Shown piece after piece: positions 854-18,245 of a DNA stretch of 64,000 nucleotides. Source of the DNA: Paraphysomonas bandaiensis. Its lineage: Eukaryota; Protista; Chrysophyceae. The notes below the pieces were generated by a model, which had not been told where the DNA came from, searched no databases, and saw only the letters and a program-made list of their open reading frames with translations. The DNA lies in contig CBFFRP010000029.1 of the NCBI GenBank assembly GCA_965644295.1, forward strand, positions 1-64,000, read 5' to 3'. Numbering within the stretch: position 1 is the first letter of the stretch; each line of letters begins with the position of its first letter. The position numbers and the translations under genes were made by a program.

Positions 854-1140
854 TGCCCCATTCTGAGCGCGTACTTAGGTAGATTCGGATGGGGGTCGGG
901 TGGGTACCTAACTAATACTTGATTTAAGTCCCATACGTTATTTGCTAGCTACCTACTGATCCCAACTAGCTACATCATTATCACATGGTATTCAGCGCTG
1001 AATATGCAGTGAGACCCCGGGTGGGGTAGTGCTGAACTAAGCAATGTGTACATAGATAGAGGCGATCAATCGCAGCAGCACTCAGCCGCACCCACTAGGG
1101 GGCCGCACGCAGTAATTAGTTACGCTGTCAATATGGGGCA
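854..1140 (+). mobile_element. Solo-LTR-like repeat, family A copy 1 (287 bp)
   Basis: Termini TGCCCCAT...ATGGGGCA (TG..CA with an 8-bp inverted repeat). Near-identical copies at 5169-5710 and 12082-12344. Confidence 0.8.
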
Positions 1141-1151
1141 CTGACGTCTGC

Positions 1152-2573
1152 TCAAGAATCGTCATCACACTCATAACAATTCGCAAAGAATTCAAAATCT
1201 TGTACATCTCGAACCAGAGCTATAGTAGCGCCCAAACCTCCGATGCACACGCCACCTATAAACACTCCTGCCGCAGCAACCCAGTTAAAAGCGAACATAT
1301 ATGGCAAATGCACCCATTCAGGTGGTTTCTTCACCATAGATTCCTGTTCTTCCGATTTTTGATATACAATGTTGTATGCGACAAGAGGAATAATATAAGT
1401 CGATAGACTTACGCCGAATGCCCCGAGAAGTGTATTCACTGACCCATAAAACGGCATCGCCGCGGCTAACATTAGTAAAAACATTGCCAAAGGTATGCGG
1501 CATAAAATTCTTTTGTAATAGTTCTCATTGTAAACATTCCAGTATTTTTCCCACATGTGATACAGCGGCCCAGAAAACAGTCCAAAGGCAACCATTTGGT
1601 GGATGACCATCATTACAATACCTACATCTCTCTGTATAGACGTGTCATAAAGACTGAAAGCATTCGCATTATATCGGGTTTCTTTTCCGAACATATAATA
1701 CGTAGAAATTGCGTTAGGTAACGTCAGGGTAAATACATAAAGATAAGAGTAAAAGTAGCATTGGTCATACGCAGCCGGGTCGTCCATCACATCAGCAACC
1801 TCAATATTAGAGCTATGTCCACCGAATGTGAAGAGTATTCCCACCATACCCTGAAAATAATTAAGTATACCTCCAGTAGTGTAGTTGACATCGTCTACTT
1901 GTCCTTCCTTTATCGACTCAAACGTCATGAACCAAGACACATAAGTTGTTGTAAGAACGCCAAACACAGACATGACTCTATAGTGGCGAAAATTTGGTAT
2001 GAACAGCATAAACAGAAATATACACCCCCATATAAATGTCCAGCTCCGTTTGCTTAAACGTTCTTCAAGGAGGTAAAAATTTGAAGCTGTTGCAATAATT
2101 TGAACCGCCGATAGTCCAACCAGAGATATGTACACCACGATTTGGCTGAGTAGTCCCATCCTTTGACCAACTAAATTATACATAAGTTCAGAGTATGAGA
2201 CAATGTGAAATGGATCCCGATGATGCGGATGAGTTGAATCCACATCTATTTTGCGACGATAAGTTGCATGGAGACTGACTAACAAGAAGTTCGTATAGAG
2301 AGCTAATGTGGCAAAGAGAAATTGAAATATGATCCCAGAAGCCAATCCGGTCAATGAAAACATGAACGGAAGGGTCAAGATAACTTGACCAACTTCCTGT
2401 GAAGCAGCTAGCAGGAACCCATCAAATATCCCACCACCATCTAGTATGAACCCCAGTAAATATCCCCCACTACTCTCTCTGTGTCCTTTCGACAGTAAAG
2501 ATGTTCTTGTTTCTGATAATCGACACTCCGATAGAGCAGAGTCTCTCCTACAAGAGACAAGAGGGTCCTCCAT
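1152..2573 (-). CDS. AUX1: AUX1/LAX-like amino acid/auxin permease (AAAP family), intronless, 473 aa
   Basis: Colinear with plant AUX1 motifs as recalled: GGGIFDGFLLAASQEVGQVILTLP (GGSVFDAWFSCASNQVAQVLLTLP), QIIATASN, KRSWTFIWG, FIPNFRHYR, TFGGH, YVFTLTLP, HQMVAFG, PLYHMWEK, YIIP, KPP and C-terminal FANCYEC (FAKCYQC). Confidence 0.9.
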   Translation of the reverse strand: MEDPLVSCRRDSALSECRLSETRTSLLSKGHRESSGGYLLGFILDGGGIFDGFLLAASQEVGQVILTLPFMFSLTGLASGIIFQFLFATLALYTNFLLVSLHATYRRKIDVDSTHPHHRDPFHIVSYSELMYNLVGQRMGLLSQIVVYISLVGLSAVQIIATASNFYLLEERLSKRSWTFIWGCIFLFMLFIPNFRHYRVMSVFGVLTTTYVSWFMTFESIKEGQVDDVNYTTGGILNYFQGMVGILFTFGGHSSNIEVADVMDDPAAYDQCYFYSYLYVFTLTLPNAISTYYMFGKETRYNANAFSLYDTSIQRDVGIVMMVIHQMVAFGLFSGPLYHMWEKYWNVYNENYYKRILCRIPLAMFLLMLAAAMPFYGSVNTLLGAFGVSLSTYIIPLVAYNIVYQKSEEQESMVKKPPEWVHLPYMFAFNWVAAAGVFIGGVCIGGLGATIALVRDVQDFEFFANCYECDDDS

Positions 2574-3011
2574 ACTAACAATACTCAGTCGCTACTGTAA
2601 TGTGGCATATAGGAGTGGTGTGATACTGGTGTATCATTGTGTATCATGCACACACAGACTGTCTCTGCATGGTGCGTCATGTCCAACCTGCTGTGGATAC
2701 ACACCACAGCAGATGCATGTACTGCTGCACAGCAGGCGGTGTAGAAAGATACCATAAAACAAGCATTTTCAGGGATCGTATTGTCTAAAAGTCGTTATTT
2801 TTATGAAACCAGCAGCACAGCGTACTGCAGCACAGCACATGTTTGTACTGCTGTATAGTGTATGTGTATGTATGCACGTACAGCGGCAGTGTGTATATAT
2901 ATACGTGTGTTCAGTTATATAGAATCGTTGCTTATAGGTACGTTATGACAGACAGCACACTCATCGAGCATTCCATAATTGCATCATAAGCACTAGTTGA
3001 TCAAACCCCAA

Positions 3012-4481
3012 ATGCTATTGCCACTTCTCCTGTGCATTCCAGTGGCTAGTGCCTATGTATATCCACTGACTACAAGCAATTTCAGTTCATTCATCGAGTC
3101 GTCCCCTATAGCTCTAGTTGAGTTTTATGCACCATGGTAGGAATGATGCACTTCACTCATGCAGATATCTCATTGTGATATCACATAGGTGTGGACACTG
3201 CAAGAAGTTAGCCCCTATATATGAAGAAGCTGCTGCTGTGTTGGCTGCGGATAATATTCCTCTTGCAAGTGTGAACTGCGTTGAAGAAACATCACTGTAT
3301 TACAAGCATGATATTCAAGGCTATCCTACAATCAAGGCCTTCCTTTTAGGTTATACGTGTATTTACATTAGTTTTATTTGAAGTAATGGTTATGTAATAG
3401 GTGAACCAATACTCTATGATGGTGCACGGGAGCTACAGGATATTGTAGACTTTATGAGAAATATGGCAAGCCCTGGGACAGTAGACGTGGATACCGATGG
3501 TCTTCAGGCGTTCACCGCGGAGCATCTTGCTGAGAATCACCCCGTAATGGTAGCATTTTTACCTCCGCCCTCGGAACCAATGCACACCGATACGCTGAGG
3601 GCGTTCCAACTAGCCTGCAAGCGCGTTGGTATATTCTCCTGTGGAGTATCACAAAATGTCGCCCTACTTAAGGTAGGTTACTCCACATATCACTTTTATT
3701 TCTCAACAACCAAAATGTAACTTTCAGGGTATTGCTGGTGATGCTATGTCGGTGCCATCACTTGTGATGCTGCGGGCATTCGAAGACCCCTTCGAACAAC
3801 GTCATCTTGTGGGGCCATCGGTCTCTGACCTATTCCCTACAGAATCAGTCAGCAATAATATAGGGGCAGCAGCCCAAGCCATGGCCCAGTGGATGGTAAA
3901 TTACGGCTATCCTGAAGTGACCGTCTTCGCTGAGAAAAATGCAGAATTAATGTTCTCGGACAAGCGCCCGGTATATAAATACACCCTGTAGAATGTTGTG
4001 TGTGTATTGTCCAGTTACTCCAATACTTACTGCTCTGATATATTTTGTTCTGATGATATATTATTAAGGGATTCGCTACACACATTCTGTTTTTTTTCGA
4101 CAACAGTTCCCCCACGGAGACTGCTGAAATGAAAAGATTTAGAGAACTATCTCGCCGTCATCGAGGAGAGGCGGTGTTTATTCTGGTCGATACAGCCACC
4201 GTGGATACTAATGATTATGCCTCAAGTAATGTGTACTACTGGCTCAGACTCTTTATTTATTGATTATTTCTGTAGGTGTGATGGAGGATCTTGGGGTCGT
4301 GGGACACGCCCCTACTGTGATTATCATTCGATCAGCGAAGACGCAGGTAGAGTTCTACCGCCTCAGCTCTGAGTCTGAGGCAACTTCCTTCAACGTGGAT
4401 GCAATGACCACTCACATTGAGAGTTTTTTTTCCAACAGTCTTGATCCAACAAATGTAGTAAGTCAGGAACCGTCAACTTAA
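3012..4481 (+). CDS. Protein disulfide isomerase-like protein (signal peptide, one active thioredoxin domain plus b-type domains), multi-exon
   Basis: ATG at 3012 gives MLLPLLLCIPVASA. VEFYAPW|CGHCKKLAP is joined across a GT-AG intron, followed by IQGYPTIK and YDGAR. TAA at 4481. Confidence 0.85.
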
Positions 4482-5168: not shown

Positions 5169-5710
5169 TTCCCCATTCTGAGCGCGTACTTAGGTAGAGC
5201 CGGGTGGGGGCCGGGTGGGTACCTAACTAATACTTGATTTAAGTCCCATACGTTATTTGCTAGCTACCTACTGATCCCAACTAGCTACATCATTATCACA
5301 CGGTATTCAGCGCTGAATATGCAGTGAGACCCGGGTGGGGAACCGCTGAACTAAGCAATGTGTACATAGGTAGAGGCGAGCAATCGCAGCACTCAGTAGC
5401 ACCCACTAGAGGGTATTGAGAATTGCTCATTTTAAGCTAGATCACAGAGAGAATTTGTCGTAAGACTAGATAGATTTATTAATATCGTTTACACGAAGTT
5501 GTGATATATATCCTACATATGCGAACCTCTCGTTACTGAACATATCTTGAAAGATCAAACTATTTCAGTTTCTCAATATCATCACAGCATTTGTACATCA
5601 CTATATTCTCGTACATTGTCGTCAAGTGACATACTGAATATACTAGAATAAGATCCATATTCTAATAGAGGGCCGCACGCAGTGATTAGTTACGATGTCA
5701 ATATGGGGCA
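5169..5710 (+). mobile_element. Family A LTR-like repeat copy 2, interrupted by a nested insertion
   Basis: Matches 854-1140 over 5169-5413 and 5668-5710. Confidence 0.8.
5414..5667. mobile_element. 254-bp nested insertion, probable solo LTR with TATT..AATA ends
   Basis: Absent from copy 3, which shows the empty site TAGAGGGCCGC. TSD GAGGG (5409-5413 and 5668-5672); imperfect TIR TATTGAGAAT/ATTCTAATA. Confidence 0.75.
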
Positions 5711-6024: not shown

Positions 6025-9000
6025 TTAAAGACAAGCATTTCTCTCATCTTGAACTGCCATCTCTAGTGATTCCATTTTGTCATCTGAACTTCTTTTTACT
6101 ATCTCATAGCCTTCTCCTTTCTGTTCTTCCCTATCGCTCACCATAGCATCAGGAGTTCCAACTGAAGACTCTGGCTTGAACGGCAAAAGAGGTATGGTTA
6201 ACTTATTCGTCTGGAGAGCGAACAAGAAATACTGAGATACTCTGAAAAATACGACATATGCCAATAACACCCCTAACATGCCCCAGGCAGGGATATCTCT
6301 AAGGTTGAAAATTTGGTCCAACACCTGCTTGCCAGTCATTTCTATCTTGGGGTCGCTCCCAGAGACGGTGAAGTCTTGGTCACGAAAGATCATCCACGTG
6401 AATCCGTTAAAAGACCACTGCAAGAGTAAAACACATCAGGAACACCGACAACTGCAAATCGCATCTAGCACAAATATAAAACTTAACAATGAACTTACAT
6501 GGAGCGGAACCACAGAGCACAACCAGGCCACAGCTTTAGGCATTGCCGACTGCTCACGAAAAAAACCTGAAAAAAGCATATTCGTTCCAATAAATATCAT
6601 TCCTGCCGTCGTACTTAAGAAATCGTTCTTCAGAACCTCTACTATGACCATAATTGCACTCTCTTGTAGTATCAAGTGACCCCATGAAATGAAAATGTCA
6701 TACAGGAAAGTTTCTCCATGAGGATTGAGGTCCACCAACCAGTGAAAAATACACACAAAGATGAACGCTGCAAAGAGATTGTAAACAGTCGACACGATAA
6801 ACTGGGCAACGACGTATACTCCTGGAGAGTAGAAGCCATTGGCAACTCTATCTACTGCCTCACGTCGGTCACGGGCAAACAAAGAGGTACTTGTCACCGC
6901 GCACAGCATAACAGCCACGGCAGTAGAACACATAGCTCCCACATAAGCATTAATCTGATCTGTCTCAGTATCGAGATCAAGGAATAAAGTACCCTCAAAG
7001 ACTGCTACGATAATCAGTGAATACACACGGTATACAAAATACCCTGGCTCTTTCATGAAGTAATATAAAAAGTGGAGAATCATAATGATCAGGCGATTCA
7101 GTATACTCGGTGGGGTCCGAGGTTCGACAGAGGATGTCACTTTTTTCGATGCCTCAAACGCTGTGTAGTATTTGTTTCCATATTCAGACTCATTAAAAAG
7201 CTCTGTCCAAGTCTTATCGTGGCCTTTCGGATCACTCTGCACAAGATCCAGGTAATAGTCCGCTGGATTAATTTTCTCCGGGTTAGTATACCCCAGAGAA
7301 GAGAAGTAATGCTTTGCGTCGGCAATGCTCCCACCGTAAACCATACGCCCTGCTTCCAAAAGAAACAAGTCATCCAGCATCTCAAAAACCAAAGCCGAGG
7401 GCTGGTGGATGGTCATAATAATGGCGATATTCGTCGTTTTAGCCACAGATGCTAGATACTTCACTATACTGTAAGAGGCGGTACTGTCAACACCAGTGGT
7501 AGGCTCTATACACAATTAGGATTATATAACGTAATAATACAAGTAATAACGTATAAGATAGTATTAATAAACACCATCGGGCATACTATATAGGCGCTTA
7601 CGTACCGTCTAGGAAAAGTATAGAGGGATTGGAAATAAGTCCCACTCCGATGCTGACCCGTTTTATCTCACCACCAGACAGGTGTCTGACTTGAGTGTCT
7701 TTCTTTTCTGTCAATCCTAGCACCTTCAAAATCTCCATAGCCCTAGCTTCCATCTTGGAACAATCATGGCAGGTAAGTCGGCCCACCAACAGCACATGCT
7801 GGAAGACGGTTAACACATCGTTGACCTCATCAAACTGAGGCACATAAGTGAGGTCATGTGATGTCATGTCTTTCCCCAGAAACTTTACAGAACCCTCAAG
7901 TTTGGCATAAGAGGCACGTTTTGCTAAGCCGCTGCAGAACACACACTATTAAAAATCGAATGACTAGCGCATGTTCAGTAGGACAGTGCAGTTACGTATA
8001 AAACTATCGCGGCAAAAAGCATATATTGTAGAATATAGAATACGTATATCATTTCCATCACAGAAGTAACTAGTAGGCAATTAATCGTACTTGAGTAGCG
8101 TTGTTTTACCAGCCCCAGATGGACCCATGAGTGCAAGCACACGCCCAGGTTGAACATATCCAGACACGTCATCAACAAGCCTCTGCCCTGTTTTTGATAG
8201 TACTACGCTTAAGTTTGACCACGAAAGTGATCCGTGGCTTTCTTCATGAAACGAGCCTTGGCGTACCGTTCGGCCTTGGATTTGATCGGCAGGAGACACC
8301 ACTGACTGAGACTGCACACTCGTGTATATACTCTTTTCAGCCGCAGAGTTACTGTTATCGTTTCCACATGACGCATTGCTTGCTGCTGTAGAATTATCTG
8401 CTGGTGTTCTCACATAACAGGACTTTGCCCAGTAGAAAATACTATCGACCGGGTAATACGTCAGAAATGCAACCCCAAGTTTCAGGCCCACAAATATGAT
8501 ACACATGTATCCGAAATATTCCCAGTAACTCTCATCTCTCTGTATTCCCTGGTTAACTTCCAACATCTCACGGCCATTTACTTCACACCCCGCGTTTGTA
8601 TCGTGGTAATAGTCGCACTCATACCGAATGCCCGTCCCTGGCTCTATACACTGTCCCTCGGAGTCAACTTCATCGCACCTAAAGTCCATGTACTGAAAGA
8701 CTTCCATACTGATTGTGCGACTTCCTTGAGCAAAGACAGTAGCCTCTTGCAACCATATCCAGTACCTACCATATATATGACACATATATTAATACAAATA
8801 GAAGTGTGTGTGAACGAGGAGTATACGATATAGAATGGTTTGTAGACAATACACCTACTACCTTGGACAGTCGTTCCAGGCAACAAACACACCACCACCA
8901 AACACCTGAAGGTTAACAAGGCATATTTGGGCGAACACCATCGATGTTGTAGGATTGTTGGACAGCAGAGTTACAACAGCAATCATCGCTTCTGCAGTCA

Positions 9001-10577
9001 TGAACACCTGAAGTACACTGTAAGACGACGGTATATCGTAGACATAGATTTACATTATGAATTACACCACTAACGATGTATTCTAACTTACCATCCAACC
9101 TGCCAGAATGAGAAAAGGGTATGCTCTGGCTGGGAAGCCCATCATGAAGTACATTATCACACCTACAGGGAAAAACATAACTCCCAATGTGGCTGTCGAG
9201 ATCGTGTCCGATAAGAGGACCGCAAACTTGCTGTACTTGGCATTGTAAACCTCATGAGTAGCACGCTTGGTGGAAGAGCTTAGGTAATACACCTTGAAGG
9301 CATGTACCCAACAATAGGAAAGTACAATCCATAACAGCGCAGATGAAAATATGTTGAAACTCCCATCAACTTGGCGGGGGAGGTTCCAAAACACAGCGCC
9401 AATAAGTACTGCAAAGGAGAGCATTAAATTGAGTTGAAAGTGGTACAATGTAGGATCCCTATAGGCCAGAGTGTAATCTCTATATATCAGCAAATACAAT
9501 TGCTTTATAAAAGGTACTGTATTTTTGGGCACGTCGACAGAGTGCGTGCCAGTCTCACATATCTTCTTATGATTTTCAAGAGTATTCCGCAATTCGACCC
9601 CCTCAGGAGCGGCGTGGAACATACAGCTAAAATCCGTTTCCTGGTCAATAGAAAAGCTCTTGTCTGTAATCTGGAGAAAATAGTCAGTTGGGGTGACGGA
9701 AGTAGGACAGGAAAAGCCATGTCGAGAAAAGTATTCTTCACACTCTGATAGAGCCCCAAAAAATACCCCTCCTCCACTTTCCATGAGCATAATGTGATCG
9801 AATAATTGCAACATGCGAGAGTTCGGTTGATGAATGGATAACATGACCGAGAATTTTCCTTCGCTTGATTTGACCAAATCGTGGATACATGACAAAACTT
9901 CAAATGCAACGCTTGAATCTAAGCCTGATGTGGGCTCGTCTAAAATGAGAATGCTTGGTGATGCTATGAGCTCGCATGCAATCTCCGCCCGCTTTTTCTG
10001 ACCCCCACTCAAACCACGCTGCAAGTCATTCAGAGCGGTTAGAAAACATACAAACCATAGAATGACACAAAATAATAACCCATAACATGAAATCATTACA
10101 GAGCAGACAACGTACAAAGATGAGAGTGCCTATGATTCCATCTGCTACATGATCGATACCGAGCTTTTTCAACAAATCCGCGACATCCTTTTCAATAACT
10201 TCTTCCGAGTCATTCCTTTTAAACATCGCCGTATATTTAGTGACCTCTCTAGCTGTGAGTTCGCCCAACACGCTGTCATTCTGAGGCACATAAGCTACTG
10301 GATTGTGTATATTCTTGGGATTAACAATTCGACCATTCATATACACATCTCCCAATACATCCAGATCTTGAATACGCCCTGAAAGGGTTTTTAACAGCAC
10401 ACTTTTCCCCGCTGCAGAGGGTCCTAACACAGCTGTTATTCCGCCTTTCACGACATATCCAGAGACATTCTTTAATATATAATTGGAATCAATTAAACTG
10501 TACACAGAGAGATCTTTAAATCCAACTGAGATGTTCTCTGCCTTAATCCCATAGCCACTTTCAGGATCCTGTGACAT
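6025..10577 (-). CDS. Full-size ABCG (PDR-topology, NBD-TMD-NBD-TMD) transporter, multi-exon
   Basis: NBD1: GPSAAGKS, LSGGQKKR, ILILDEPTSGLDS, SIHQP. NBD2: GPSGAGKT, LSGGEIKR, ILFLD|EPTTGVDS, TIHQP. Two ABC2-type membrane domains; the ORF pieces are joined by GT-AG introns. Confidence 0.92.
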
Positions 10578-10997
10578 GACTTTATCAGACACAATATGCA
10601 GTGAGTTATGGCACTTGAGAAGTAGTGAGTTATCATCTCAGTTGCTTCCATCCACTTGTTTGAGTGTCAAATTATTTTCTGAGTAAATTCGGCTTCACTT
10701 TTTACATCTTTAATGTAATTTTGTCTATACATGCTGTCAATAACCATTTTCTATAGTTCATATTTTTGTCCTATGTTTTTAAGGTATTTTTACATTTTTC
10801 GATTCTAACTTATATTGTCCTGGAATTCCAAATCCTAGAATCCTATAGGAGCATGAGCGATATATCTATTCAAATGCAAATACAGCACATAGCACTACGT
10901 CGTTCTTGATTCGCCTGGGGTGGCCTCTACACAAAAACATGTTAACGTTTTTGCTATCGCAGTATGTATGGCAGGTTTTTGAGCATTCTCAACACAC

Positions 10998-12081: not shown

Positions 12082-12344
12082 TGCCCCATTCTGAGCGCGT
12101 ACTTAGGTAGAGCCGGGTGGGTACCTAACTAATACTTGATATAAGTCCCATACGTTATTTGCTAGCTACCTACTGATCCCAACTAGCTACATCATTATCA
12201 CACGGTATTCAGCGCTGAATATGCAGTGAGACCCCGGGCGGGGAACCGCTGAACTAAGCAATGTGTACATAGGTATAGGTGAGCAATCGCAGCACCCACT
12301 AGAGGGCCGCACGCAGTGATTAGTTACGCTGTCAATATGCGGCA
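12082..12344 (+). mobile_element. Family A LTR-like repeat copy 3, preceded by a PPT-like G run
   Basis: Matches 854-1140. GGGGGG immediately before the TG is consistent with a 3' LTR. Confidence 0.8.
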
Positions 12345-13992: not shown

Positions 13993-16900
13993 ATGTCGAT
14001 GTCTCCAATCCCTCTCCTGCTACTGCTCTGTCATATGGCGGATGCTATCAGTCTGTTGCGGCTTAATCGTAACTTTGAGACAGAGTCGAGTAATATGGCT
14101 GATTATGATATCATATCATGCTCAGGTGAAGAAGATGAACGTGAATGTGATCCAAACAGTGAGGGGTTTGCTGATTATGCTGAGGTATGTATGTTTTGGT
14201 TGCAGTAGCGTTACGTTGTAACTGTATTATGGTTATACAGGCAGCTGTGGGGTTATATGTCGGTATTAATATCATTGGACTAGTGGCTGTCTTAATAGGA
14301 ACTGTATGTTTCATATTGTATTTATTGGTACGATGCTGCATGACCTGCTGTGGGTGTCATAGTCAGAAAAAGGCAAGTGGGGAAACTGTGATTCCAAGTG
14401 ATGAGGATGCCGCTGACAATGTGGAATATATTAGCACTCGTAAACCCATAGCCAACCCTATAAAATTAGTTTGTGGGTCTTTCGCTGTGCTGGGTATTGT
14501 AATTATGTGTATTGTGAGTAATACGCTTGGTAACAATGGCCTCACTGAGGAGAGTTCGGGAATAGTGAATGCACCAGCTGGGATTCAGCGAATATCCCAA
14601 GACTTTGAGCCGAAATTGACGCAATTGGTAATCTCTATTTCGAGTGGTGTTGTAGTCCCAACTATGTTGTCCTTGAATCGAACTATTAATGATGCAATTG
14701 ATATTCCTCTTCTTACAGAAAACATGCTTATCATTAATGAAAGCATACCAGAATTACCTGATGTTGGCGTTATGCTGGATGTACTGTACAACATCGATAA
14801 CATTACAACTGGTAATATTACATCTGACCTTGTAAACGAGCTTGGGGACCTTTTAGAGGCTTTAGATGATTCTAGAGAACGTGCCGTTGAGCTGGTTGAC
14901 CTTCTACAGGACGATGTAGATGCGATGGCGAGCGCAAACGAAGAGATGCTCGAGGCAATTGACCAGGCAAACGAGACAGTCATTGCTGCTGATGACTTTT
15001 GTGGTGAACTCATCGGCACTGATGAGGAGACAGGGGTTGCTGCAGAGGTGCACAGTGACTTGACAACCATTCAGCGCTCCCCTGCCGGTACCGTCCCCTC
15101 TGTCGGAGTGTTTGACGAGGCATCCAATGGTGAGTATGGCAGCACCAGTGAGTTACTTTCTGGTGACATGAACGGGAACTCATCTAACATTCAACTCATG
15201 AATGAGCGACTCACACTTATATACGCTAATATGTCTAGTCTTCCGAACTACTCTGTTACTGCAATGAATATCGTGGCATTGAACGAGAGTATTAATGAAG
15301 CTCTCAGCAACTCTGGTATCTTAAGCAACCTTACTGATTCATTACTTGAACTTGAGTCTTCGACGGATAGCTATCCCGATCTAAGCGCCACAGCTAGTTA
15401 CGTTAACGAGCTCTACAGTATCGTGCAATCTGTAGATGTAGACCTTGATACCGCACTGGACATTTTGGAGCAGCTAGATGATATGTTCAATACCATACCA
15501 AGTGACCTGGCTGTGTTGTACCAAGAGGTGGAGGCAGTGCGCGTTGTTAGCAAAATCCTCTCTGCATTTGAGGTCCTCACCGATCAGTTGCTTGGTGTCA
15601 ATGAAACTCTTGTAAAATTACCATCGTCTCTCGACACATTGACTGATGTTTACAGTGATATAAATGAGACCACTTCTGAATTACTGGATGACATAGACGA
15701 TATACTGGATGACATAGTGGATGCAAACGAAACTGTTGTCGGGTATTTAGACGATGCTGAGAAATATTTGGAAGATATAAATGAGATGGACGATATTCTG
15801 AATACCTCTCTTAGTAAATATGATTTTAATGCCTTCAACGACACTATAAACGATGCCTCGGAACAACTTCAGGCTGTTAATTTTAGTAGCACTTTGAATG
15901 ATGTGAACTCTTTGAGGGGTTCTCTGGAGGCACTTAGTCTTAGCAACGATCTCGTGGATGCACTGAGAGCTTTTCAAATTGGTGTGGAGGGCATGGTCGG
16001 TCTACTTCGCCGCGCTGTGGACCCTATTAATGGGGGTCCTAGTGAGGACAAAGCAGGGGATTACCTCCAACTGGCAGGGGGCTACTGCTCTGATGACAGC
16101 ACTGTGATATGTGATAATGATACTCCCTGCTTCGGGAGCTGTGTAGGCAAAGGTACTTATCGGTGTTCCAACGATGGCTCGACTCCATGTAGTAGTGATT
16201 CAAACTGTTCCGTTAGTGGTTCATACTGTCTCGTAGACTTTAGCAGGGCTGCTGATCTTCATGTTCGTCTTCGTTCTCTGTCCTCAACTGACAGTGATAT
16301 CGATGTGTCTTCCGAGCTTGACAGTTTAGATGAAGTTCTAGAAACTGATGACGTGGACTTCGATGCTGCGCATGATGCGATTACTTCTGCTGAAAACGCA
16401 GTTACCGCTGTTAACCTCACGGATGTCAACAGTATGCTATCTTATGTAGAAGACGGGCTAGATCAATTCAACATCACTGGAGCTGTTGGGGAACTAGACT
16501 ACGACTTCACTGATCTTGGAATAACTGATATTATAGAGCAGCTTGAGCCGGTAGAAGATGATGTTGCTGATTTATCTGATGAGTATCACCCCATAGTTCG
16601 CGACTACTCAACCACAATGATTGCATTTAGAGATTTTATGTTTACTGAGCTGCAGGGGTATATAAACAACCTATCCTCCAGTGCGTTAAATGCAGAGCTG
16701 AATTCTAGGGGCCCAAATGCAATGATCAAATTTATTGTGAGTCAATTTGACTCAATTACGCACTATTTCGACGAGAATCAGGATGGAATAACTGTAAAGA
16801 CAACTAGTTTTAGGGATGACGCCGGCAATTCATTCAAAGTGCTCGATAAGATGGGAGCATATGAGGTATCTGGGTATGGGGATATAGATAAGCATGGAGC

Positions 16901-18245
16901 TACGTACTATTTCCTCAGTTTATTGCGGAATAAGTCTATTGTCCAGTGGAATCACCCAATGCTCATGGGGGTGTTTGTGAACTCCGATTATGAAAAGTAC
17001 GAGGATGGAGATGTCTGTGTGACAGAGAAGTGCGAGGATCACACGATGGAGGTTCTAAACTCTGCCCCTTTAAGCGACTGGGACGATGAGTTTCCTGATC
17101 TTGATCTGTCTCTATTTCAGACTGTAGACTACACGAGAGAAGAATTATTGATCTATCTGTGGTTAGCGCCATTGTGCATTGCATTTCTTGGTTTTTTGTC
17201 GTTGGTACTTCACGCTGTACAAAAATGCACAATGGCAGAAAAGATTACGAATGGCTGCTATTTGGGTTGCATTCTATGCCAACTTCCATTTCTTTTTCTT
17301 CTGACAGCTTTTTTCTTCGCATTAGCGATTGTGATATCGGATGGATGCAACTCTTGGTCAGCGATTGGTGAGTCGTACATCACATCTTACGGTGATCCTT
17401 TCTGTGAAAATAGTCTTAGTGGTGACGGCACGTTGAGAGAGTGTTCCTTTGATACAAATATACCTGATTCAATGGGAGGAGGGAATATTACTGCTACGGT
17501 AGACATCATTTCGTGGTATCGTGGTATATTTGCCAATGATTGCTCTGGACGGCCAGACCCTTTCGCTACGCTTCTCAGATCTCTGGCTGATCAAACGAGA
17601 GATATTCCTGCTGGTGCAGTTGATCACGTTATGGAAGATAATGAATTAAACCTTCGTGACGCGCTGCTTGATATTATGGACACTGCTGCCGCAGATACAG
17701 GCACGATGATGCATAACTTTTTTGACAGCCTTGCCGATGAGGTGCTGACATGCGAAAAGGTTGCGGGGGTGATTGCGTCCGTAGACAGAGAGACATGTGA
17801 CTCGTTTGCTCCACCTATTTTCTGGATTATAGCTCCCTGGTATCTCTGTGCTTGGATAATTTGTTGTCTGGGCATTCCCAGTGCGTGCATGCGGGCTAAA
17901 ATGGAGTTGGAAAAAGTATCCCCAGAAGCTCACGTTCCGTTGCATGAAATGCCGGGTGGGGAGGAGGAAGAAATGAAGGCAGACAGTCCAGCATATCGCC
18001 CCTCGTCCACTAATAGCAATCAAATCACAAGATTTCAATCCGTCAGTAGAGATGACAGCTCCATTGGCGATGGGTTTGTGAATATTGCAACCGCTGCAGC
18101 ACTGGAAGTCGAGGATGTTGATGATACGAGGCGTTCTTTCCAGAGAAGGGAAAATGAAAGATTGAGGAAGCAAATGGTTAAGGGAACCTTATATGATGAT
18201 AAGGATGCTGTACAGATAAGGAGGGCAGGTGAAGAGGCTTTGTGA
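13993..18245 (+). CDS. Giant prominin/tweety-like five-pass membrane protein (~1398 aa; intron 14185-14240)
   Basis: Signal peptide; TM1 followed by RCCMTCCGC; TM2 followed by GN; ~870-aa acidic helical ectodomain with many N-x-S/T sites and a Cys-rich insert; TM3-TM4 followed by SDGC; second Cys-containing loop; TM5; cytosolic tail. Confidence 0.75.

Follow-up and report, generated by a model that had tools for sequence, protein, structure and literature searches.

The window, a stretch of 64,000 nucleotides, carries on its minus strand an intact gene for a true relative of the plant AUX1/LAX carriers, and a specific homology, rather than generic similarity to AAAP transporters, is confirmed by alignment, predicted fold, and phylogeny. 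The protein belongs to a sister clade of AUX/LAX that is conserved, duplicated, and expressed across centric and pennate diatoms. Seven of its residues at positions that contact indole-3-acetic acid (IAA) in AUX1 are different. On balance, we favor a histidine/proton-coupled importer of an amphipathic carboxylate or an amino-acid-like solute, with a specificity that would be non-canonical for the family. The transcribed unit is laid out as follows:

1152 to 2573, minus strand: coding sequence of the AUX/LAX-like AAAP transporter, intact and intronless, with an ATG start and 473 amino acids plus stop
2574 to 2625, minus strand: 5' UTR of at least 52 nt (positions 1 to 52 of contig L024 align to window 2625 to 2574)
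940 to 1151, minus strand: 3' UTR of at least 212 nt (L024 aligns down to window 940)

The JGI contig L024 (1,687 nt) encodes an identical 473-aa protein. Since it is collinear with window positions 2625 to 940 (99.5% identity), the gene has no intron. Nine differences separate this contig from the genome; one is in the coding sequence and is synonymous, and eight of the nine fall in the part of the 3' UTR that overlaps a repeat. L024 is mRNA-sized, and JGI contigs for other MMETSP transcripts in the AUX/LAX-like family have similar lengths. We take it to be RNA-derived, judging from its length and from the kind of material in that JGI sample series, and this transcript-length contig suggests that the window gene is expressed.

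The Pfam Aa_trans model (PF01490) matches residues 48 to 423 (E = 1.9e-44, 152.4 bits versus a curated cut-off of 25.6), while a search of NCBIfam returned noise only. The end-to-end colinearity with AUX1 reported in the earlier note is borne out by phmmer against PDB sequences, in which residues 21 to 470 align to residues 20 to 468 of Arabidopsis AUX1 with two small gaps only (E = 5e-86); LAX3 is matched at E = 2.6e-84 in the same search. Both AUX1-specific motifs to which that note had drawn attention are present, TFGGH at residues 249 to 253 and CYEC at residues 466 to 469. The latter is a feature of the C-terminus:

1167 to 1178, minus strand: C-terminal CYEC, residues 466 to 469, equivalent of the LAX3 Cys462-Cys465 disulfide after TM11

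C466 and C469 are invariant in the alignment of 39 sequences from which an AlphaFold2 model was built (mean pLDDT 88.3, pTM 0.86). This model has 11 long helices, TM11 included, and a predicted disordered N-terminus (residues 1 to 32). Its top Foldseek matches are LAX3 (9h63 and 9h61) and AUX1 (9lva), with target-normalised TM scores of 0.95 to 0.96 and rmsd values of 1.7 to 1.8 Å. As modeled, the protein is shown to be an 11-helix carrier of the LeuT fold that superposes on AUX1 and LAX3. With the Arabidopsis proteins of the LAX D clade (9jdr, 9lva, 9h61, and 9h63) it shares the 11-TM LeuT/APC fold with the extra TM11, about 34% identity end to end, the coupling histidines, Q62, Q153, P332, TFGGH, and the position of the C-terminal disulfide. 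Unlike them, it has 45 unrelated N-terminal residues and belongs to a clade outside the green lineage. The next family in the Foldseek ranking, SLC38A9, reaches TM scores of only 0.6 to 0.7. SLC38A9 and other AAAP/APC transporters have the LeuT-type fold and fall in the same Pfam family, but at 11% to 14% identity and TM scores of 0.5 to 0.7 they have neither the H249 position nor TM11 nor the CxxC motif.

In a phylogeny of 48 sequences (IQ-TREE, LG+C20+F+G4, supports given as ultrafast bootstrap/SH-aLRT), the protein falls inside an AUX/LAX-like superclade and not elsewhere in the AAAP family. This superclade comprises land-plant LAX A to D, chlorophytes, and diatoms, is supported at 99/97, and sits on a stem of 1.56 substitutions per site; in a 70-row tree that includes two AAAPs of the same genome its support is 99. 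Together with the H249 position, the CxxC motif, TM11, and the fold match at a TM score of 0.95, this placement upholds the assignment to AUX/LAX over a generic AAAP. We consider it highly improbable that the gene encodes a generic amino-acid permease with family-level likeness to AUX1, or that its contig is contamination from a green alga or plant. Pfam recognises only the general Aa_trans domain and the same genome has at least 15 other AAAP loci, as a generic permease would lead one to expect, but those other AAAPs have neither the H249 position nor the CxxC motif, the stem of the superclade is long and well supported, and structural similarity drops steeply from AUX1 and LAX3 to SLC38A9. 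Contamination is at odds with several silicon-transporter loci, a second copy of the gene, and named nearest relatives that are all diatoms, and on these grounds an origin from a green alga was ruled out.

The host is most likely a diatom; failing that, it would be a close silicifying relative. Its genome contains at least seven loci for silicon transporters (PF03842), versus none in 14 bacterial control genomes, and the named close relatives of the protein are from Seminavis robusta, Cylindrotheca fusiformis, Pseudo-nitzschia multiseries, Fragilariopsis cylindrus, Thalassiosira exigua, Mediolabrus comicus, and Detonula confervacea. The earlier note was therefore right to place the gene in a non-plant host.

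Its description of the carrier as plant-type fared less well. The diatom clade (96/95) lies outside all green-lineage members and is sister to a clade of chlorophytes and land plants (78/84), and the AU test rejects a topology that joins diatoms to land-plant LAX (p = 0.0014), and with it a recent transfer from land plants. A topology that joins the diatoms to chlorophyte clade B survives the same test (p = 0.25), so that the phylogeny is equally compatible with an old exchange with green algae and with vertical descent accompanied by wide loss. Within the diatoms there are two subclades, C1 (100/98) and C2 (100/99); since each includes Thalassiosira and a pennate member, the duplication that separates them dates far back within the diatoms. 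The window protein and its own paralogue form a pair (100/100) that branches below all other sampled C1 sequences (82/83). Also in C1 are the "Auxin transporter-like protein" of Seminavis robusta and JGI proteins labeled "auxin influx carrier (AUX1 LAX family)", whose identity to the window protein is 45% to 55% and whose pocket signature is the same, although their labels are automatic and they lie above the branch of the window protein and its paralogue.

The paralogue is the only one found in a search of the whole genome assembly (62.6 Mb, 669 contigs). It lies at G000:C475:37528-38930 on the minus strand (loci L002 and L003), is 55% identical to the window protein, and has two exons separated by one intron of about 50 nt. 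An MMETSP protein (P0002) matches these exons at 100% and 99.7% and is the spliced product of the gene, which is therefore transcribed; it also follows that the host species has a sequenced transcriptome. At the position of AUX1 Asn58 the paralogue has Lys, and the window protein has Gln.

An exhaustive protein search of 1.84 billion cluster representatives returned 44 at E <= 1e-30. The named full-length representatives are from chlorophytes (Micractinium, Coccomyxa, Trebouxia, and Botryococcus), mosses (Ceratodon), Selaginella, and seed plants (Punica); the names of the Sphagnum and diatom homologues come from database word searches. No named member from other eukaryotic groups appeared in the protein search, in which many matches are unnamed environmental sequences, and a feature search of the ESM Atlas returned streptophyte AUX1-type clusters only. 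Some database entries among the green-algal sequences appear to be misnamed or misfiled. Three AUX/LAX-like proteins of Trebouxia (P0049, P0079, and P0242) are named "Lymphocyte transmembrane adapter 1" at NCBI, an apparent annotation error, and Bacillus vallismortis is given as the source of a 60-aa fragment of the Coccomyxa protein (P0237), probably because of contamination.

The binding pocket was mapped onto AUX1 through gap-free phmmer segments and two multiple alignments; AUX1 numbering is used below, and LAX3 numbers are lower by 2. The contacts of the ligand in this pocket are known from two structural studies published in 2025. In AUX1, the carboxylate of IAA bonds with Y244, Q62, and Q153, its indole NH bonds with N58 and T325, and its ring packs on A61, H249, and A329, with H249 serving as the pH switch (PMC12337342). 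The hydrophobic half of the LAX3 pocket consists of F143, L144, V249, F326, A327, and P330; IAA uptake is abolished by Y242F, F326A, A327F, H247A/F, and H319A/R, Cys462 and Cys465 form a disulfide, and there is no uptake at pH 7.4 (PMC12364708). Many of these positions fall in three segments of the window protein:

2385 to 2405, minus strand: unwound segment of TM1, ASQEVGQ, residues 57 to 63 (AUX1 56 to 62), with Q59 for N58, E60 for Q59, and G62 for A61; Q63 (AUX1 Q62) is kept
1809 to 1832, minus strand: unwound segment of TM6, FTFGGHSS, residues 248 to 255 (AUX1 244 to 251), with F for Y244 and S255 for V251; H253 (AUX1 H249, the proton switch) is kept
1566 to 1601, minus strand: segment of TM8, HQMVAFGLFSGP, residues 325 to 336 (AUX1 321 to 332), with A for T325, L for F328, and F for A329; H325, the second coupling histidine, is kept

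Residues kept relative to AUX1 are Q62, L146, Q153, H249, H321, P332, and both cysteines, and those changed are N58Q, Q59E, A61G, F145S, Y244F, V251S, T325A, F328L, and A329F. Both coupling histidines are thus present (window H253 and H325, corresponding to H249 and H321 in AUX1 and to H247 and H319 in LAX3). Only Q62 and Q153 are retained from the set of IAA contacts (N58, A61, Q62, F145, Q153, Y244, T325, F328, and A329); at positions 58, 61, 145, 244, 325, 328, and 329 the window protein has Q, G, S, F, A, L, and F. The altered TM1 motif described in the earlier note (ASQEVGQ versus ASNQVAQ) is present, but the change is not confined to TM1, as all seven of these contact positions differ. 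Two of the substitutions, Y244F and A329F, match the LAX3 mutations Y242F and A327F that abolish IAA uptake.

The same states prevail throughout the diatom-type proteins. Counts among 44 full-length diatom-type sequences, in AUX1 numbering, are as follows:

Position 244: F in 44 of 44
Position 325: A in 44 of 44
Position 328: L in 43 of 44
Position 329: F in 43 of 44
Position 61: G in 42 of 44
Position 59: E in 42 of 44
Position 251: S in 42 of 44
Position 145: A or S in 42 of 44

Among the retained residues, Q153 is found in all 44 sequences, Q62 and H249 in 43 each, H321 in 38, and the two cysteines in 43 and 42. A subgroup of diatom C1 proteins (P0034, P0035, P0036, P0039, and P0043, the last from Pseudo-nitzschia multiseries) has Asn at the position of H321, and P0038 has Gln. 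Mutation of this histidine abolishes transport in LAX3, and transport by the diatom subgroup may be coupled to another ion or to no ion at all.

Much of this pocket signature extends beyond the diatoms. Chlorophyte and moss copies, as well as the outgroup sequences P0151, P0160, and P0183, carry G61 and F244; in them, position 325 is mostly A, position 328 is aliphatic (L, I, or M), and position 329 is mostly F or Y. Because the diatom proteins share these states with the chlorophyte and moss homologues and the outgroups, G61, F244, A325, L328, and F329 are probably ancestral. Some chlorophyte copies and Selaginella LAX C copies depart from this older state at several positions. The combination of N58, A61, F145, Y244, T325, F328, and A329 occurs only in the seed-plant representative of LAX D (P0072). 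Chlorophyte and moss proteins are otherwise much closer to AUX1 (528 bits for Sphagnum P0055), and since the moss relatives of AUX1 lack the IAA-contact set, it seems confined to the LAX D line, which suggests that it was assembled late, within that land-plant lineage. The moss proteins P0055 (Sphagnum), P0218, and P0224 (both Ceratodon) are labeled as auxin influx carriers, yet they are without N58, A61, Y244, T325, F328, and A329.

The chlorophyte proteins (Chlorella/Micractinium, Coccomyxa, Trebouxia, and Botryococcus) and the LAX A, B, and C clades of mosses and lycophytes (Singh et al. 2018) belong to the same superclade as the diatom proteins. The older pocket, with G61, F244, and A325 together with L or M at 328 and F or Y at 329, is common to the diatom proteins, the moss copies, and most chlorophyte copies. 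In contrast to these green proteins, the diatom sequences form their own clade and have Glu59 and Ser251, where green members have Gln59 and a hydrophobic residue; Glu59 and Ser251 would accordingly be diatom innovations, as far as can be read from the alignment. In the nearest outgroup sequences (P0151, P0160, and P0183, from Logan), the C-terminal CxxC motif and the H321 position are already there and H249 is missing. This lineage could show where the AUX/LAX-like family came from.

The importer that we favor would work by secondary-active, alternating-access transport of a small, amphipathic, carboxylate-bearing solute. As in AUX1 and LAX3, its two histidines would take the place of sodium sites and couple transport to protons, and the two glutamines equivalent to AUX1 Q62 and Q153 would hold the carboxylate of the ligand. 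The candidate substrates are IAA and other aromatic or indolic acids, and tryptophan and other aromatic or neutral amino acids. Because the hydrophobic half of the pocket is in the older state and carries the diatom-only Glu59 and Ser251, the protein most probably does not have the high-affinity specificity for IAA seen in AUX1/LAX of seed plants.

If instead the protein were a true IAA influx carrier, functionally equal to AUX1/LAX, it would be the route by which diatoms take up bacterial IAA. We regard this as rather unlikely, though several observations fit it. The window protein resembles AUX1 and LAX3 in architecture and has their two coupling histidines, Q62, Q153, and the disulfide; the pocket is still amphipathic, and Gln58 could replace Asn as the bond partner of the indole NH. 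Diatoms respond to bacterial IAA, which is reportedly taken up (Amin et al. 2015), and Pseudo-nitzschia multiseries has a member of the clade (P0043). IAA (pKa 4.75) is almost wholly anionic at the pH of seawater, so that a carrier would be needed. Set against this are the seven differing ligand contacts, including the equivalents of two substitutions that each abolish IAA uptake by LAX3, although the effects of single substitutions in LAX3 need not carry over to a pocket with seven altered positions, where the volume freed by the missing F145 could be filled again by F329. An anion is also disfavored by the additional Glu59 beside the carboxylate site. LAX3 itself shows no activity at pH 7.4, and in the Pseudo-nitzschia protein and the rest of its subclade Asn replaces the second coupling histidine.

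Coupling through histidines with a pKa near 6 also fits poorly with import from seawater, whose pH is about 8, and therefore an acidic internal compartment, or coupling that uses another ion or is retuned by Glu59, is possible. Several AAAP members are lysosomal or vacuolar. The first of these options, in which the protein acts on an acidic vacuole- or lysosome-like membrane and exports its substrate to the cytosol as SLC36 and SLC38A9 do, would supply the acidic side that histidine proton coupling needs, in keeping with the alkalinity of seawater and the inactivity of LAX3 at pH 7.4, and the next-best structural match is the lysosomal SLC38A9. It appears improbable nonetheless. The AUX/LAX members characterised so far all reside in the plasma membrane, and in the window protein no targeting signal was identified. 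An oxidising exterior is also what one would expect for the conserved extracellular disulfide, although such a bond could form in the lumen of an organelle as well.

A more speculative proposal, which we think doubtful, is that the diatom clade provides the missing uptake route for bacterial IAA and related indoles in the phycosphere and is adapted to alkaline seawater by Glu59. Lying next to the coupling histidine, this residue could raise the pKa of that histidine or create a cation site. If so, auxin import by a carrier arose or persisted beyond the green lineage, and seed plants would only later have refined an older pocket for aromatic acids into one with high affinity for IAA.

While the homology itself is already visible in public databases, where automatic labels call several of the diatom homologues "auxin transporter-like", AUX/LAX has been called "unique to plants" in the 2025 paper on the LAX3 structure (PMC12364708), and IAA transport genes are not known in algae according to a 2023 review. 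Singh et al. 2018 described AUX1/LAX-like sequences from chlorophytes along with four clades from land plants, LAX A to D; they do not mention diatoms, and they stressed that there is no functional evidence outside LAX D (PMC6275028). Full-text literature searches, whose reach did not extend to the review by Vosolsobe et al. 2020, found no paper describing the diatom AUX/LAX-like clade. Diatoms are the group in which bacterial IAA has been shown to act as a growth signal, and the clade offers named candidate genes for the uptake of IAA or tryptophan-like compounds by diatoms and for their exchange with bacteria. Further, comparison of the pockets makes the ancestral substrate of the family a testable question.

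The surroundings of the gene bear on one further claim, that it is intronless among intron-rich neighbors. The first part stands, as described above, and the second holds only in part. A thioredoxin-like gene at window 3118 to 3991 is split over several open reading frames, as is a full-size gene for an ABCG/PDR-type transporter at about 6025 to 10592 on the minus strand, in which introns are therefore implied; the latter contains the ABC_tran and ABC2_membrane domains, each present twice. The neighbor at 14187 to 18245, however, is a single open reading frame of 1,352 aa. The last ~165 nt of the 3' UTR of the AUX/LAX-like gene (window 940 to 1102) overlap a dispersed repeat of about 165 to 200 nt, further copies of which lie at 5255 to 5414 and 12157 to 12344 (88% to 93% identity). 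Downstream of the gene, near the end of the contig, a 90-nt direct repeat occupies positions 66 to 155 and 608 to 697, its two copies 96% identical and 542 nt apart.
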